From the NCBI GenBank assembly GCA_965637545.1, contig OZ281497.1:22754001-22818000 (forward strand): 64,000 nucleotides of DNA, given 5' to 3'. Below, in pieces: positions 41,144 through 50,200 of the stretch. This DNA comes from Phallusia mammillata (Eukaryota). Numbering within the stretch: the stretch's first letter is position 1; every line of letters begins with the position of its first letter. A program made the translations under genes and the position numbers. The notes below the pieces were generated by a model that saw nothing but the letters and a program-made list of their open reading frames with translations, had not been told where the DNA came from and searched no databases.

Positions 41144-43232
41144 ACGGTGATGACATGATAAGAAGGATGACGCAAACGGAGATGATATGGTAAGAAGGAT
41201 GACGTAACAGGTGATGATCTGGTAAGAAGGATGACGTAAACAGTGATAATCTGGCAGAAAAGATGACGTAAACGGTGATGATCTGGTAAGAAGGATGACG
41301 TAAACAGTGATAATCTGGCAGAAAAGATGACGTAAGCGGTGATGATCTGGTAAGAAGGATGACGTAAACGGTGATGATCTGGAAAGAAGGATGACGTAAA
41401 TGGTAAAGATCTGCTAAGAGAGATGACGTAGATGGTGATGATGCGGTAAGAAGGATGGCGTATATGTTGATGATCTGCTAAGAAGGATGACGTAGAAGGT
41501 GATGGACTGGTAAGAAGGATGACGCAAACGGTGATGATCTGGTAAGAAGGATGACGTAAACGGTGATGATCTTGTAAGAAGGATGACGTAGACGGTGATG
41601 ATCTGGAAAAAAGGATGACATAGACGGTGATGATCTGGAAAAAAAGATGACGTAAACAGTGATGATCTGGAAAAAAGGATGACGTAAACAGTGATGATCT
41701 GGTAAAAAGGATGACGTAAACTGTGATGATCTGGTAAAAAGGATGACGTAAACGGTGATGATCTGGAAAGAAGGATGACGTAAACGGTGATGATCTGGTA
41801 AGAAGGATGACGTAGACGGTAATGATAGACGCTGATGATCCGGAAAGAAGGATGACGTAAACGGTGATGATAATCAGGTAGAAAGGATGACGTAAACGGT
41901 AATGCTCTGGTAGGAAGGGTGACGTAAACGGTGATAATCTGGTAGAAAGGATGACGTAAACGGTGATGCTCTGGTAAGAAGGATGACGTAAACAGTGATT
42001 ATCTGGTAGAAAGGATGACGTAAACGGTGATGATCTGGAAAAAATGATGACATAGACGGTGATGATCTGGAAAAAAGGATGACGTAGACGGTGATGATCT
42101 GGAAAAAAGGATGACGTAAACAGTGATGATATGGTAAAAAGGATGACGTAAACAGTGATGATCTGGTAAAAAGGATGACATAAACGGTGATGATCTGGTA
42201 AAAAGGATGACGTAAACGGTCATGATCTGGTAAAAGAAGGATGACGTAAACGGTGATGATCTGGAAAGAAGGATGACGTAAACGGTCATGATAGACGGTG
42301 ATGATCTAGTAAGAAGGATGACGTAAACGGTGATGATCTAGTAAGAAGGATGACGTAAACGGTGATGATAGACGGTGAAGATCTGGTAAGAAGGATGACT
42401 TAAACAGTGATGATCTTGTAAGAAAATTGACGTAAACGGTGATGATCTGGTAAGAAGGATGACGTAAACGGTGATGATCTGGCAAGGAGTATGACGCAAA
42501 CAGTGATGATCTTGTAAGAAAGATGACGTAAACGGTGATGATCTTGTAAGAAAGATGACGTAAACGGTGATGATCTGGTAAGAAGGATGACGTAAACGGT
42601 GATGATAGACGGTGATGATCTGGTAAGAAGGATGACGTAAACGGTGATGATCTGGTAAGGATGACGTAAACGGTGATGATAGACGGTGATGATCTGGTAA
42701 GAAGGATGACGTAAGCGGTGATGGTCTGGTAAGAAGGATGACGTAAACGGTGATAATCTGGTAGAAAGGATGACGTAAACGGTGATGCTCTGGTAAGAAG
42801 GATGACGTAAACAGTGATTATCTGGTAGAAAGGATGACGTAAACGGTGATGATCTGGAAAAAATGATGACATAGACGGTGATGATCTGGAAAAAAGGATG
42901 ACGTAGACGGTGATGATCTGGAAAAAAGGATGACGTAAACAGTGATGATATGGTAAAAAGGATGACGTAAACAGTGATGATCTGGTAGAATGGATGATGT
43001 AAACGGTGATGACCTGGAAAGAAGGATGACGTAAACGGTGATGATATGGTAAGAAAGATGACGTAAACGGTGATGATCTGGTCAAAAGGATGACGTAAAC
43101 GGTGACGATCTGGTAAGAAGTAGGACATAAACGATGATGATCTTGTAAGAAGGATGACGTAAACAGTGATGATCTAGTATGAAGGATGACGTAGACGGTG
43201 ATGATCTGGTGAGAAGGATGACGTAGACGGCG
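41144..43232. repeat. 32-bp minisatellite, about 65 copies
   Basis: Unit GATGATCTGGTAAGAAGGATGACGTAAACGGT with point variants; 41928-42167 recurs at 42746-42985. Confidence 0.97.
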
Positions 43233-46200
43233 ATGCAGAAGAAGCTAGCAGGAAGTGACCAAGAAACCAATGATCACAATCTAGTAAAGATGATGACGTT
43301 GGACGAGTGGTAAACATTCCAAACGTGGAAATGCTTTGACCGCATTGGTGTGGACAATTCACGAATATATCAAAGATGAAGTAGAAATTGTTAGCATATC
43401 TTTGTGGTAGACCATGAGGTAGGATCATAATAATGACAAGATGGTACATGCGGAGAAGTCGATTGTGAGAGACGTAGCACAGGTGGCAACTGAGTTGAAG
43501 TTAACCTTGGCGAAAAAACACGATGATAAACGACGCATTGCATGGAAGTCCAAAGGTCTTTGATAGGCGATAGGTAGTTTGGGCGTTGAATAAACAATGG
43601 AATTCAACGAGAGTTTGTAAAGTCAACATATCCATAACATAGTCCGATAATGCGATATATACAAGTTGTGACACAGTAAGTGCAAATGTCAATGTAAAGT
43701 TCTCCACTGATATTTAATTGAATATTAGTAAACAATGACAATAATTTGCAAAACAGTAACAATGGTTCAAGCACAATCTAAATTTAAAATACCAATTACA
43801 AAATAATCACAGTACATTAAAGCTCACTGCTTCAATTACAAAATACACATGAGATATTCTATGATATAAAAACAAACAAACTTTGGCCCGCAATCCTTTC
43901 TTAACCACTCAAAATCTATTCTATCTATTTCGATCCATTCCTTCAAAACCATTTTGCTGTACTGAAAACCTGTTAAACCCTTTACTGTCCTTAAACGTGT
44001 TATTTAAACTTTCTTAGTACCCACTTAAAATGTACTTGTTAATGCTGTTGCTGACATATCAATTAACTTAGTACCACTACTTAAAGTTCTATTCATCTAT
44101 ATCTGTCCTTTAATTTATCGGCCTTTTGCTGTATTGAAAACCTGCTTTGCTGTTTCCTTTCCTAAACGTTTCCTAAAATTATGTGGCATTCTTTTCAGAA
44201 AAACAAAACAAAATACACTCTCACTGAATATGTAACAGAAACATATATAAACTACCATTGCACTTTGTTATAACTTATAACAAATTAGCTAATTATACAG
44301 AACGCTGCATGTATATGTTCCAAGGCCACAGGTTCGACTTTCAGAAGTTTCTGATTTTTCTTTGTTTCAGAAGTACCAACAATATCAGTTGCAAATTTGT
44401 CAATCTGTAATCAGTTTTTAAGCAGAGCAATTTCAAAATATACTGGTCCCGCACTTGTACAGAAATCAGAAACAAACTGCTATTGTTCTCACCAACGAAT
44501 GCTGTTTTTTTTAAAGTAAACAAATTTCAGATCACTGAGTTTCGAAACAAGTCACTGACTTAATAACAGTTACAAATAACAACATCTGTTTCGGCAGCAA
44601 AACAACAAATCTGGATCGGCAGAAACCTACAAATCATGACAAAGTTGTTTGAAACTGCTGTTTGTTCAACACTTGCAAGCGTCAGAGGACTTTTGCAGCA
44701 TATGTCTGAAAAAAAAACAAGCTACTGCGGCTGTTTTCAAATCCACAACACACAATCAGTTACTGGTATACCTATAACTATAATTACAGGTTTGTCCATT
44801 TTTCTGATAAGCAGAAAACAACAATGCAAGCATCCAACAACGTAATTGCAAACCAGATTCAAACTGTCGGTTTCATAGCAGAAATATATATTACACTAAC
44901 AAATCAACACTGTTTCTCGCGCTTTTTTTCCTGGTCTGCGTTAGAGGTGTAGGTCAACTCTGCTCACGTATTGTGTCTTAGCTTTTACAACTAATCACTT
45001 CTAGGTACCTTGGATCTTTAGCTGTAACGCCTGACTTAAATTTATGCTGTTGTATTACTATGCTATTTCATTGCCATAAAAACTAATTTCTGGTAGAAAA
45101 TACAAAATCTGTTGATATTTTCTTACTGGTGATTTCAACAAATAATCTCGACCTAGTGGATGTAACTTTTTGGACCAGCTACGTTGGGCCAAAGTTTGTG
45201 TTATATAAGACACATGGTGGTAAAAGTGGTAGTACTACAAAATTTAAGATATGACATATAAACAGCATAAAGAACACCAAGACATACGTTTCAACGATGT
45301 GTGAATGTTACGAGTCATTTAGTCCATTGAAAACTCTTTCGTTGGAGTCGCTGATTTCCAAAAAGCGTGTAATGACTTTGGTGCTTCTCCAAGAAAATTC
45401 TAGCAAACAAAGATGGGCACTAATATAAAGTAATTACAAACTTCTAAAAAATACACTGGTTGTTGCTACGTTTATGACACAGGAGCTATGTTTATACCAA
45501 ACTTTAAGCAAAGACATTATTTTCGCAAGCAGTTGACTAAGGCTTTTCTCAACGAGTAAACATTTTTAAGTTAGATTTTAACAAATTATACTTTGTATGG
45601 TGATTTTTCAATTTAATTCAAACATGCAACGATCGCTTTTTCGGTGTGGGTCAAATAGCTTCCTAATGCATTAAAAACGTTAATTCTAAAACAACTGTTT
45701 ACATTTTCATTTCGTTACGAAATCTAAAGCGAAGGTTCATTCACAACACGTAAACGAAGCAAGCAACGCTAAAAACTGCTTGTGGCAAAACGCGCAAACG
45801 TCTTGTAGGTTGCATGTGTTTGGGCAATCAGCAAAAAGTGCCGTTCGAGCAAAAGCGCTCTTGCTTGAAACTGCATTGGCAACAGCTGACTTAAAAATCT
45901 CTAAGTTAAGTGTACAGTCCAAATGTTGGTAACATCATAATAAAGACCAAATTTGGTACACTTTAAACAACATAAAAAAAGCACAATTTTTCACAGCGCT
46001 GTTTCACAAGGTTTACATAAAATTTTTACATTAATAACTATTTTTTTGGATTAGTTTTATTGAATTTTAAGTGCTAATACCTTACCCCGACCCTAATAGC
46101 CCTAACCGTTAGCATTTTTTTAGATATACCGTTTTAAAAATTAAGCACTTTTGGATCTCCTAGGAGGCACTCCGTCAGTAGCTCTACCGTTTCACAATGC

Positions 46201-46736
46201 CGAAAAACACCTATACAGCAGTAAGTACAAGATTGAATGGGTAATTTCGCAAAACAAGTTTAGTAAAGTATTTATACCGCGCTATAACTGTGTAGCGATT
46301 ACGTCATAATTTGTGCAAACCTTGCAATAATTGTTTGCCAAATTAGCTGGTTTTACTTGCTAAAATGCTCGAGTTGATAATATTCCCTGTTACAGTTAAA
46401 TTAGGAGGTTGATCGACTTTGCTATCTGGTGTTTACCCGCTTTAATCGTATGTTTTGTATTGTGCGGTAAATTTGGCGCTGTTTTGTGTGTGAGAAAATG
46501 TGCAAGCACCAACGGCAAGAGCATAGTTGTACAGTTTAATGTCACGTGTAATGAATTTATAAAACGTACCGCTGATGTAATGGCTCATAACAGTTTTAGT
46601 CCTATACCGCAGTTAACTCTTTGGCTTACTGTTCAATTACTTGCATTGAAGTAATGTGTTGGTTGCTAGCTTAACTTGAATTTATATGTAAACGTTATTA
46701 CTATTAATTTCTAACGACTTGTTTTGTTTCTCAAAC

Positions 46737-46803
46737 ATTCTATTTGAATAAGCAATCTATTTGAATAAGACATTCTATTTGAATAAGATTTTATTTGAAT
46801 AAG
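46737..46803 (+). repeat. Four tandem copies of the Ciona-type spliced leader ATTCTATTTGAATAAG
   Basis: Exact at 46737-46752 and 46772-46787; one mismatch at 46754-46769 and 46788-46803. SL identity is from recalled literature. Confidence 0.85.
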
Positions 46804-47200
46804 TAATAAACAAACGAACCGAAGTGCAAGACACGTGTGTGGAGTTTCCAGGACTCTGTCCTGACAAGCCCAGGAGCTTGGGAGGATAAGGACGGTGATA
46901 TACCTCTTTAATTTGTAGTGACGCGATTATATCCTTGAGACTCATCAGCGAACAATACCATAAACATTCGATCACTACAACTGTGACCAAAATACTTTTA
47001 CAACATCAATATTTTATTAATTGTGTACCTTGTTTATGGTTTGTGCAGGATCCTTTACCACATATATGTCATGACTGCAACATTAAATGTCAAAATACTA
47101 AATAACTTAACATTTTCATTAATTAGCTGACAAATTCAGCACACACTTAAATCAGCAAAAAGTCTTACTCATGTCTCGTATTAGCACGAAACTCACTTAC

Positions 47201-50200
47201 GTGTATTATATTGACGGTAGAAGGCGCTAAACTTCGTACAGTTGCCGATTTGTCTGAATACCGAACGTAGATTTTCTCCTTCAACGCAGGTGCGAAAATT
47301 TCAATCTGAGCACATTTAACTCAAGGATTGAAGTTATTTTTTTACGAACTTTTACCACTATATTGCGGATGACAAAGTTTGTTACGAGGCAAAAATCGAA
47401 AAGTTATAAAATGTTTGTTGAGACTCAACAAAATTGATGTGTTAACAGTAATACCTTCACCTTTGCAATTAATCCGTTTTTGTTAATAAACTGGTCAAGT
47501 CCAGTCCAACTGACAACAACCGTTGAGGCGTTGCATTCAAAAGTCGTTGCGTTGGTAACAACTGTTGATGCATAGTCACAAAATTTAAAAAAGAATGTCA
47601 AATTATTCCTTTTACCCACACAATGATTCTTTTATTACCTGGAGGATAGCAACTAGATGGTGGGTTAGGAAATGTTGTGAAGTCAAGGGTGAAGGAGACG
47701 TTAGATCTAACGCAACCAGAAAGAATTGCGGTGACCTGTGAATTAAATGTTGCTTTAAATAATTCTGCACATTTTCCGCGTATTACACTGTTGGACTACT
47801 TCGTGTTGTTGCTGTTTTAGGTTATGTCGATGGTTATCATTAACCTGTAATGTATAATAGAAATGTTCGCAATTTTTGCTATATTTACATTTAATTGATA
47901 TTTTGTGTCAACACTCAAGCTTCCAATCGCAGTGGATCCATCTAAATACGGGGTTCTGAATCTTCTGTTCAGCCTCGAAACATGAATTTCAACCTAAGTA
48001 CAACACATTTCGAAAATGATATGAAAAGTCGCCAGCTTTTAACAAATGTTACCACTGCACTGAGATTATGTTTTTTGATGAATTGATCAAGTCCAGTCCA
48101 CCTGACCACCACAGATGAAGCGTTGCATGCATCTCTCTTCACTGTAGCTTTGACTAAAAGTGAAATAACAAGTTTAATTAAAATGTAGCAGCAGGTTTGC
48201 ACAGTATGTTTAACTTAGTATTATTTGCAGCAACAGGAGTATGCAAACACTATCTCTGTCAATTCATTCACTCGATTATACGCTGCCCTGGATTATAATT
48301 TGCGTGCTGTCATGTTCGATACTATAGTTCTATCGTTGGCTGTTTTGTTATTTGGCAACAATTGCTGGCTAGTCAAACGACGAATTTGGAACGCGAATTG
48401 AATCATAACAAAGGGATGGAGAAGTAACATGGGCATGACAGTAAACCGCCATCGCATAGCTTTGAGGCCTAGTTTCACAGTATGTGTCTGTAACTTTTGT
48501 ATCGATAATATTACCTAGCTATAAGCAGTTAGTTGCTGGACTTAACCCGGTGCCAAACGGTGCCACGAATCTCATAGGGTTAAGGTTAGGGTGAAAAAAT
48601 GTCGTAATGATCAATAGCCATATGATAAAGCAGCGGGTGATAACTGACGCATGATCAAATGTCGTGTGACAGCGGATGATGAAATTTCGAGTGTGATAAA
48701 ATGTCACTCAACCGTGCTAAACAAACCAAAAACGTCCTGTATAAGGCATCGTCCATTATTACCCATCATGCCTTCTCTATTGTTCTTTTCAGCCCTACTT
48801 ATTGTAGGGTTTGCATGTATGGATCTGTCAAACAAACTTTCGGGTTTTAACCGACTTTTCAAAACCAATTCGGCTTCGGGCTTACACTTTCCAAGTTAAG
48901 GTCAAATTCCAGACCCACTTACAGCCATAAATGTAGGCAAACTGTAGGGAAAAAAACTTTACAAACCGCAACTTGCAATTGAATGTATACGATATTCAAA
49001 TTGTGTTTCCCATTTTTAACTTGCGCTAAACTCCAGCCAACCAACTTGCGATATCACTCACGTTTCACTTGACAAGCGTAGTAGGCCTTTCTTTTGCACT
49101 TTATGCTTGATTGTTTGTATATGTATTGTTTATTTTAAGATAAATTGTTTTGTTTTATAATTACTCACATTTTGCTTGGCAGGCGTAGTAAGCCCTTTCC
49201 CCACTGCAGTTCATGCTTGACTGCTCCCATCCGATCCCATAATGCAACGCTCCCTGCTGGCAAGTTGCAACGTTGGAAACGGGAAAGTTTGCCGGAGATC
49301 CGTCGCTCCAATACCAACCATGCAACGACGTGTTGTAACGAGCTCCAATAATGATATTTATATCTTTGAACATAAAAGTTACAACAGATTCCAATATTGT
49401 AAAGAAATATCGCTAATATTTTGTTGTTAAATATCGGCAGAAACTAATCTGGTGTTCGGAACGATCCTTGTATTTTGTAAAGTTTTTATATGACTCATTC
49501 ACACTTCGCAGTTTGTATGCATTTCGTCGACCAAAATAAATAAAAATTTTCTTTTGGCGTTTTCTGGTATTGTTAGCAAATAATGTATAGCGTGACGTCC
49601 ACCCTACAAACCGGCATTCGTTAAAAAACTCGGTGTTAGTAATATGTAAGATATTCGATCCAGTATTTGTTTGCAAACTACGTTTTGTATTTAAGAAAAA
49701 ATCTCAGTTGGGTTTCAAATTAATTGTAATTGCTAATTGAAAAATTTAGGGAAATGAAACGTAATGTATTAATTTACAAACCAGCTGCTCAACACAAACC
49801 GTTCCAATTTCCTTTTTTACTCAAGCCTTCACAAGTTTTTCCGACAGTTACTCCCCACTTGTAATCAGGTTCATTTCTCCAAGCATCACAAAAATAGATT
49901 GTTTGTCTTCTGTTTTGCTGATTGCTAAAACAAATGTGAAATACGATTGCGAAAGTAAACGTTGCAACCTCCAATAACTACGGTTTAGTTAATAATTCTG
50001 TCTTCGTTTTGTTGTTGACCATTAGTGGATGGTGCATGCCAAATGTTATTACCTTTTATACAAGTCAAAATACCACAGATGTCCTAGAGATTTTGTCCTT
50101 TTCCAAGTGCCATTTTTATGCGGACTTTTCGAGTATTTGTATTGTTGATAAAAAAAAAAAAAAAAATATATAAACCCGTTGCAAATCTGAAACAATTCTT

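Follow-up and report, generated by a model that had tools for sequence, protein, structure and literature searches.

The stretch analysed here comprises 64,000 nucleotides of the ascidian Phallusia mammillata (assembly GCA_965637545.1, contig OZ281497.1, positions 22,754,001 to 22,818,000 of the forward strand); it is called the window below, and positions count from its first letter. At 46291-46979 on the plus strand lies a solo long terminal repeat (LTR) of 689 bp. This LTR, of a type designated A, belongs to a family of non-autonomous LTR retrotransposons. Enclosed within it is a tandem array of four copies of a 16-nt sequence, ATTCTATTTGAATAAG, which matches the spliced leader (SL), a sequence that cells attach only to RNA, by trans-splicing.

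Four leader units in the window

Searching the window for ATTCTATTTGAATAAG with up to two mismatches returns exactly four matches, all on the plus strand. Unit 1 (46737-46752, plus strand) is exact, and abuts upstream sequence that ends ...CAAAC, the end of the LTR region U3. Unit 2 (46754-46769, plus strand) reads AATCTATTTGAATAAG, has one mismatch, and is preceded by an extra C. Unit 3 (46772-46787, plus strand) again is exact. It is preceded by AC, the final two bases of U3 and the same two that stand ahead of unit 1. Unit 4 (46788-46803, plus strand) reads ATTTTATTTGAATAAG, with the single mismatch C4T, and adjoins the downstream sequence, here called the body. This last variant is common to most A-type copies of the LTR, likewise at the body side. 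By shuffling, the number expected by chance in the window is 0.16, and four were not reached in any of 100 shuffled sequences. The initial annotation of this DNA had counted two exact units and two with one mismatch, and the window search bears out that count.

Tandem Repeats Finder describes the array either with period 17 (4.0 copies) or with period 35 (2.0 copies). The bases immediately 3' of units 1-4 are C, A, A, and T, so a GT splice donor follows none of the four. The body, 46804-46979 (176 bp), has a GC content of 43.8%, compared with 35-37% in the flanks and in the window as a whole. This agrees with the GC-richer body of about 190 bp described initially. The description of the SL array as the head does not hold for the repeated unit, which extends 446 bp farther upstream (46291-46736).

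The 16-mer as the host spliced leader

Exact ATTCTATTTGAATAAG occurs 3860 times in the genome (240 Mb); the reversed control sequence does not occur at all. GT directly follows the 16-mer in 3179 of the 3860 exact copies. These include a tandem array with a period of 553 bp, on contig 3 at about 11.108-11.147 Mb, where GTAAGC comes after the SL, with a short hairpin and a T run beyond it; its unit reads SL, then GTAAGCATCATACTCCTCGGAGTAAC, then the T run. To judge from its sequence, the anatomy of this unit is that expected of an ascidian SL RNA gene. An Rfam scan of the unit found no matching family. The published SL of Ciona intestinalis is the identical 16-mer (PMC1488885 Table 1; PMC7986045). 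With both the published leader and the species' own SL RNA gene array in agreement, the window 16-mer is assigned as the P. mammillata spliced leader, as the initial annotation had supposed.

The LTR and the SL RNA gene unit have C plus the SL in common (17 nt), and nothing further. Compared with the gene unit, the window array displays none of the hallmarks looked for: GT donor, intron part, or promoter. An SL RNA gene at the window locus is ruled out by the missing GT and the mere 17 nt of common sequence. That verdict had been reached earlier from the missing donor.

The carrier: a solo LTR

Among the first 30 dispersed SL matches, three have the same 60-bp upstream flank as the window array. 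When 46300-47300 was compared with the genome, about 40 places were found, 81-96% identical; matches with the sharp boundaries 46291 and 46979 are 87-96% identical. The alignments all start at 46291, and they fall into two types: A-type alignments end at 46979, and B-type alignments stop at 46788 or 46814. The window copy is of A type. It begins with TGTAG (46291-46295) and ends with CTACA (46975-46979), short inverted ends of the TG...CA kind, as do all A-type copies, and it is flanked by a 4-bp target-site duplication: ACTG at 46287-46290, directly before TGTAG, and ACTG at 46980-46983, directly after CTACA. At least 11 further solo copies, and the two full elements described next, likewise sit between matching 4-bp duplications; those at other A-type solo copies include GTAT, ATCA, TCAT, CTCG, TAAG, and GCAG.

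Two full elements (L061 and L062) show what a complete family member looks like. Each has two LTRs of 668-688 bp that are 99.4-99.7% identical within the pair, and flanking duplications (CATA and ATTT, respectively). In both, a primer-binding site (PBS) of the transfer RNA (tRNA) type, TGGTGCCGCTCGAGTGAGG, beginning with TGG, lies 2-3 nt 3' of the 5' LTR. A purine-rich stretch with the end ...GGCGTGGGGTATTT, the polypurine tract (PPT), precedes the 3' LTR. The interior, 1.7 kb, is non-coding: its scattered open reading frames (ORFs) reach at most 136 aa, which falls short of gag/pol capacity. Exact LTR-PBS junctions of the form CTACA-N(1-4)-TTGGTGCCGCTCGAGTGAGG number eight genome-wide, seven of them on contig 3. 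From these features the family is classified as a small, young, recently active, non-autonomous LTR retrotransposon.

The flanks of the window LTR contain neither PBS nor PPT, and it is solo for that reason. It is a dead, inert remnant of LTR-LTR recombination, with no demonstrated tie to the neighbouring gene. Its place, described initially as the point where a minus-strand lectin-FN3 gene stops being traceable, is simply the site of an LTR insertion. One further solo copy (L033), 12 kb from L061, has a left flank that is that of the L061 5' LTR and a right flank that is that of the L061 3' LTR; it is the recombined form, within a duplicated segment.

An exact 26-mer that spans the U3-SL junction has 35 genomic copies, 17 on contig 3 and eight on contig 6. 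The family is spread unevenly over the contigs, and several copies lie within local duplications.

A simple retrocopy headed by the SL is ruled out, because the 446 bp upstream of the array belong to the repeat. The earlier proposal of a retrocopied, trans-spliced RNA stands in part: a route through RNA is retained, while a simple retrocopy with the array at its 5' end gives way to an array inside a solo LTR.

Position of the array within the LTR

The SL units occupy the same spot in all 30 distinct LTR copies that were read. Their number per copy ranges from 1 to 5 as counted by script and from 1 to 6 by eye (L036 has six). Upstream, 446 bp (46291-46736, plus strand), interpreted as U3, are common to A-type and B-type LTRs. 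Within this region a TATA-like box, TATTAA (46702-46707, plus strand), is placed 35-30 nt before SL base 1 and is kept in the listed copies, and CATTCT around 46737 fits the initiator consensus. TATTAA and the initiator-like CATTCT may together function as a promoter. Downstream, 46804-46979 (plus strand) is assigned to the remainder of R plus U5; it ends ...GATCACTACA, and in full elements the PBS follows after 2-3 nt. AATAAA (46805-46810, plus strand), a sequence of the polyadenylation type, starts two bases 3' of the last SL unit and is a candidate poly(A) signal.

B-type LTRs are about 975 bp long, have TGTAG...CCCACA ends, and are flanked by 4-bp duplications (GACA, AATG, CACA, GACG, TACT). 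They are like A-type LTRs through U3, the array, and AATAAACAAA; beyond AATAAACAAA the two are unrelated. B-type copies L054-L060 align to the window only from 46291 to 46788 or 46814. In one of them (L059), the B-type LTR sits 3' of an A-type polypurine tract.

By the established retroviral mechanism, an LTR element takes its U3 from the 3' end of its RNA and its U5 from the opposite end, and minus-strand transfer links them within R. The breakpoint of the A/B chimera is the SL array, which places the array in R. Most likely the array is the start of R, and hence the 5' end of the element RNA.

B-type LTRs (L004, L054-L060, L064-L066) also contain a frame of 137-171 aa 3' of the array, MTLIDEVQSESEDE..., which is open in most copies; a Pfam search with this frame gave no match. 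One B-type solo LTR (L066; contig 3, 14684500-14694300, minus strand), with a GACA duplication, lies within parvovirus-like sequence, and its flank holds capsid-like and Rep-like ORFs. The upstream ORF is cut at the LTR and codes for a phospholipase A2 domain of VP1 type (Pfam PF08398, E 5.9e-06). On the downstream side there is a 350-aa ORF that has no Pfam match, along with two overlapping ORFs in different frames with HUH-like and P-loop-like motifs that were seen by eye only. A B-type continuation in the form of a virus-like element under the shared promoter was considered and ruled out: the viral ORFs of L066 are flank.

Units and their junctions

Of 30 distinct LTR copies, 27 have a first unit whose 12-nt core, TATTTGAATAAG, is exact, while the variant form stands last in the array. 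This polarity could reflect renewal of unit 1 from the real SL, or descent from one founder.

Internal units differ in the bases that stand before the core TATTTGAATAAG: C+ATTC (11 cases), ATTT (8), TTC (8), AC+ATTC (7), ATTC (4), and TC (2). The junction extras C and AC are the final bases of U3. Partial units also occur among the copies (AATAAG, TTGAATAAG). Full-length expressed sequence tags (ESTs) of Ciona carry 5'-shortened SL forms that are the same as the TTC and TC units, and these shortened units fit ragged ends of complementary DNA (cDNA).

No AG acceptor is present in the sequence between the end of U3 (...CTCAAAC) and unit 1. After the pyrimidine tract, an AG first occurs where unit 1 ends. 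The missing acceptor, together with the identity of C and AC to the U3 end, favours out-of-register re-annealing of a junction already encoded in DNA over a fresh splice ahead of the array.

Tandem SL dimers are specific to this family, which accounts for 19 of the 20 exact ones genome-wide; a count of genomic SL multimers had been proposed initially as a check. The two LTRs of one element have equal numbers of units, and their arrays differ by at most one base (L061; L039 versus L040 in L062). Set beside the relict SL arrays of dinoflagellates, these are tandem units at an inferred RNA 5' end, but without a fixed truncation point.

RNA evidence

The sequencing runs were available as contigs, from which transcript starts, ends, and strand cannot be read. 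In cDNA contigs of one run, X5, the sequence GAGTACGGG is joined straight to SL base 1 of multi-unit arrays; we take GAGTACGGG to be the tail of a cap-switch (SMART) oligonucleotide. A 55-nt X5 contig (at 46737-46772) consists of GAGTACGGG, ATTCTATTTGAATAAG, a second unit two bases short (TCTATTTGAATAAG), and ACATAAAGGTGTAGG. The last junction of this contig was not found in the genome with up to two mismatches, and its 15-mer tail has one genomic match, which is the chance level. The contig could represent an SL-SL dimer formed at the RNA level, an LTR copy absent from the reference, an exon junction, or a library artefact.

A second X5 contig is partly reconstructed from the depth tables, through a loose end before 46756 and a doubled depth at 46770. 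It would comprise the oligonucleotide tail, SL, AC, SL, ATTTTATTTGAATAAG, and TAATAAAC, out to about 46832, and it runs into the A-type AATAAAC body. According to these contigs, capped RNAs that start at SL base 1, with several units ahead of the A-type body, exist.

Other contigs document further stretches of the family. In an X6 contig (record 28), polypurine-tract sequence continues into 46294-46348, and contigs from X1 and X6 cross a B-type solo LTR plus flank.

Origin of the array

The LTR has neither the promoter nor the intron part of the SL gene, so the leader came in by way of RNA, most likely carried on a transcript of the element itself. Probably, then, the SL was captured once, from a trans-spliced element RNA; it now opens R, and the number of units shifts during reverse transcription. 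An ancestral transcript of the element would have received the SL by trans-splicing close to its 5' end, and the leader would then have been reverse transcribed into the LTR. Capture itself would have proceeded through an aberrant first-strand transfer that kept the SL complement at the end of the strong-stop DNA. Since then the leader would have been inherited as DNA in all family members read. The unit number (1-6) was most likely altered by out-of-register re-annealing of minus-strand strong-stop DNA, which would end in the SL complement and re-anneal on the SL array of the 3' R; ordinary slippage may be an alternative route. With R made of SL units, strand transfer could join the U3 and U5 of elements that share only the leader. 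The existence of A-type and B-type LTRs would be explained by such a joining across an SL-based R.

Several points weigh against this proposal. A 3' flap of SL complement should hinder normal transfer, so capture needs an aberrant one. Capture was a single, old event that cannot be replayed, and no ancestor lacking the SL is among the copies read. Neither a tRNA matching the PBS nor an autonomous partner was found. The gradient from exact to variant units may be a founder effect of related copies. Transcription start and end are approached only indirectly, through contigs, and a cap-switch oligonucleotide is visible in one run only (X5); the X5 contigs could come from other LTR copies, and the 55-nt one could be a template-switch artefact.

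Candidate relatives without the SL were noted. At about 12 genomic loci, a pyrimidine-rich ...CAG or ...CAAG stands before AAGTAATAAACAAAC. Likewise, in 14 DNA contigs of run X11, the body is preceded by a pyrimidine-rich CAG/CAAG stretch and then AAG, in place of the SL units. If these relatives are older, the boundary between AAG and TAATAAAC would be the original trans-splice acceptor, in agreement with the present SL-body junction.

Two rival explanations accept the leader but change the history of its units. A serial process, as in dinoflagellates, would trans-splice a fresh SL upstream of the DNA-encoded unit in each cycle, adding one unit per cycle. The exact 5'-most and variant 3'-most units are what such a process would leave, and the element RNA of Caenorhabditis elegans Cer1 demonstrates that LTR transcripts are open to SL trans-splicing; yet the passage from U3 to unit 1 offers no AG acceptor, and a fresh SL therefore cannot be spliced before the array. 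Internal units that often begin TTC or TC recall the shortened SL of Ciona ESTs, and the cDNA contigs open at SL base 1 ahead of further units. On the other hand the commonest extras, C and AC, suggest a duplicated DNA-encoded junction, the partial units resemble misalignment rather than splicing, and there is no cut at a fixed internal AG as in dinoflagellate relicts. Serial capture is unlikely on this balance. One capture with slippage at strand transfer is preferred to it, on evidence that does not decide between the two. Alternatively, one capture may have been followed by change at the DNA level only, through slippage or unequal exchange in what amounts to a 17-bp minisatellite. The window array can be read as two 35-bp units that are 91% alike, and unit number differs between otherwise close copies. 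Nevertheless, the agreement of paired LTRs ties the change to the making of new insertions and not to their age, and the mixed junctions (C, AC, CA, TTC, TC, partial) are out of register; slippage as such is compatible with both observations. As the whole explanation, DNA-level change is judged quite unlikely. Slippage after a single SL insertion had been one of the options listed initially: the junctions fit expansion after one capture at least as well as serial splicing, and the purely DNA-level variant is disfavoured.

The remaining rivals dispense with a trans-spliced element RNA altogether. The array might descend from the start of an SL RNA gene captured as DNA, or from an initiator that came to resemble the SL, with no history of trans-splicing in either case. 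CATTCT at SL base 1 does fit an initiator, and in the SL gene, too, the base ahead of the SL is C; beyond C plus SL, however, similarity to the SL gene extends to neither the promoter nor the GTAAGC intron part, SL-gene flank occurs in 0 of 30 copies read, and convergence on a 16/16 match is very unlikely. This origin is highly improbable. Finally, the initial annotation had raised the footprint of a non-LTR element that targets SL genes (SLACS/CZAR/NeSL type), to which the plain retrocopy of a host mRNA may be added. Copies of long interspersed nuclear elements (LINEs) headed by the SL are present in the genome, but here the repeat includes the 446 bp upstream of the array and has TG..CA ends, 4-bp duplications, PBS, and PPT, and it lacks a poly(A) tail, a non-LTR ORF, or SL-gene target sequence. 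Both versions have next to no probability, and the LTR ends, PBS, and PPT, with no SL-gene target in evidence, dispose of the targeting footprint in particular.

A further reading goes beyond a single capture with shifting unit number: the family may use the host SL as its R repeat. This joint proposal is possible, if rather doubtful. If trans-splicing used the AG at the close of the first DNA-encoded unit, it would produce a correct 5' end beginning with the SL. This would hold for any transcript that runs through the 5' LTR, whatever its promoter. Minus-strand transfer would run on SL homology, making replication independent of the exact transcription start. Unrelated SL-headed RNAs could then recombine into LTRs, as the A/B chimeras suggest.

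Other SL-bearing loci and the window neighbourhood

Dispersed SL matches include sequences of other kinds. At two loci on contig 1 (L003 and L008, at about 0.99 and 2.62 Mb), coiled-coil frames resembling a LINE-type ORF1 begin 23-55 nt past an exact SL. Both have G before the SL and look like SL-headed LINE copies; G at position -1 is found in many dispersed SL matches.

Another group consists of the SL plus a unit of about 45 nt, with unique flanks (L002, L007, L009-L016, L019, L025, L027, L028). The unit reads (C)TGATG(A), a small hairpin, and then GGCAAAATATA or GGGGAAATATA; L007 contains two such SL-headed units, head to head. An Rfam scan of nine of these loci (E up to 0.1) found no hammerhead, and only sub-threshold matches to microRNAs of the palindrome type.

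In the window, a dispersed repeat of about 180 bp (46012-46192) lies 100 bp left of the LTR. It has at least 40 copies, 89-98% identical, and resembles a miniature inverted-repeat transposable element (MITE); for many copies, the final 52 bases have a second match close by, on the other strand. Farther left, 42300-45900 is similar both to the window stretch just upstream (82-83%) and to contig 2 at about 7.13-7.23 Mb (72-88%). With minus-strand ORFs of 242-259 aa, it has the look of a gene region duplicated locally.

One X11 DNA contig (depth 348) joins 45973 to 46975, with several differences just downstream, and another (depth 362) spans the left LTR boundary without any difference. The join may represent a second haplotype that lacks both the MITE-like repeat and the LTR, although it is not a clean empty site.

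Significance and comparison with known systems

A leader otherwise known only from RNA, fixed in an LTR, is a natural tag for the start of the element RNA. On the reading preferred here, it records that retrotransposon RNA bearing a trans-spliced leader passed through reverse transcription and into the germ-line DNA of a chordate. How strand transfer behaves in vivo can be read simply from the number of units and the kind of junction. If the SL does serve as R, it would constitute a new form of retroelement dependence on host RNA processing, and a recombination route between unrelated elements. For annotation, a dispersed SL match without a GT donor in the P. mammillata genome is to be read as a retroelement junction, not as an SL gene.

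In a literature search of incomplete coverage, which is no proof of absence, dinoflagellates and their protist relatives were the only organisms with relict leaders, no SL-bearing LTR was found, and SL trans-splicing of an LTR element was seen only at the RNA level (Cer1).

A close parallel is with the relict SLs of dinoflagellate retrogenes (PMC5585692, PMC6050394). In both, tandem copies of an RNA-only leader have become DNA-encoded where a transcribed unit has its 5' end, and in both they mark passage through reverse transcription. Here, by contrast, the carrier is a retrotransposon LTR rather than a host retrogene, and the host is a chordate. Moreover, the units are full length or one or two bases short, with no cut at an internal AG; a conserved U3 lies upstream; and the array can be explained without serial splicing.

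In structure, the family resembles terminal-repeat retrotransposons in miniature (TRIMs) and large retrotransposon derivatives (LARDs), for example the Echinococcus ta-TRIM (PMC4558846). They too have paired LTRs, PBS, PPT, and a short non-coding interior, along with solo LTRs that have target duplications, and recent activity. A host SL in the LTR has not been described for any of them, as far as the literature search reaches.

The RNA of C. elegans Cer1, a Ty3/gypsy element, is trans-spliced to SL1 (PMC3315495), and so provides a precedent for the RNA of an LTR retrotransposon as substrate for the host reaction. There the leader is on a spliced 2.4-kb mRNA rather than on genomic RNA, and it is not reported in LTR DNA (PMC3315495). 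SLACS, CZAR, and NeSL likewise associate a retroelement with SL sequence. Those, however, are non-LTR elements whose insertion sites lie inside SL RNA genes, so that SL-gene sequence borders them, whereas the P. mammillata family is of the LTR type and carries the leader without SL-gene sequence around it.
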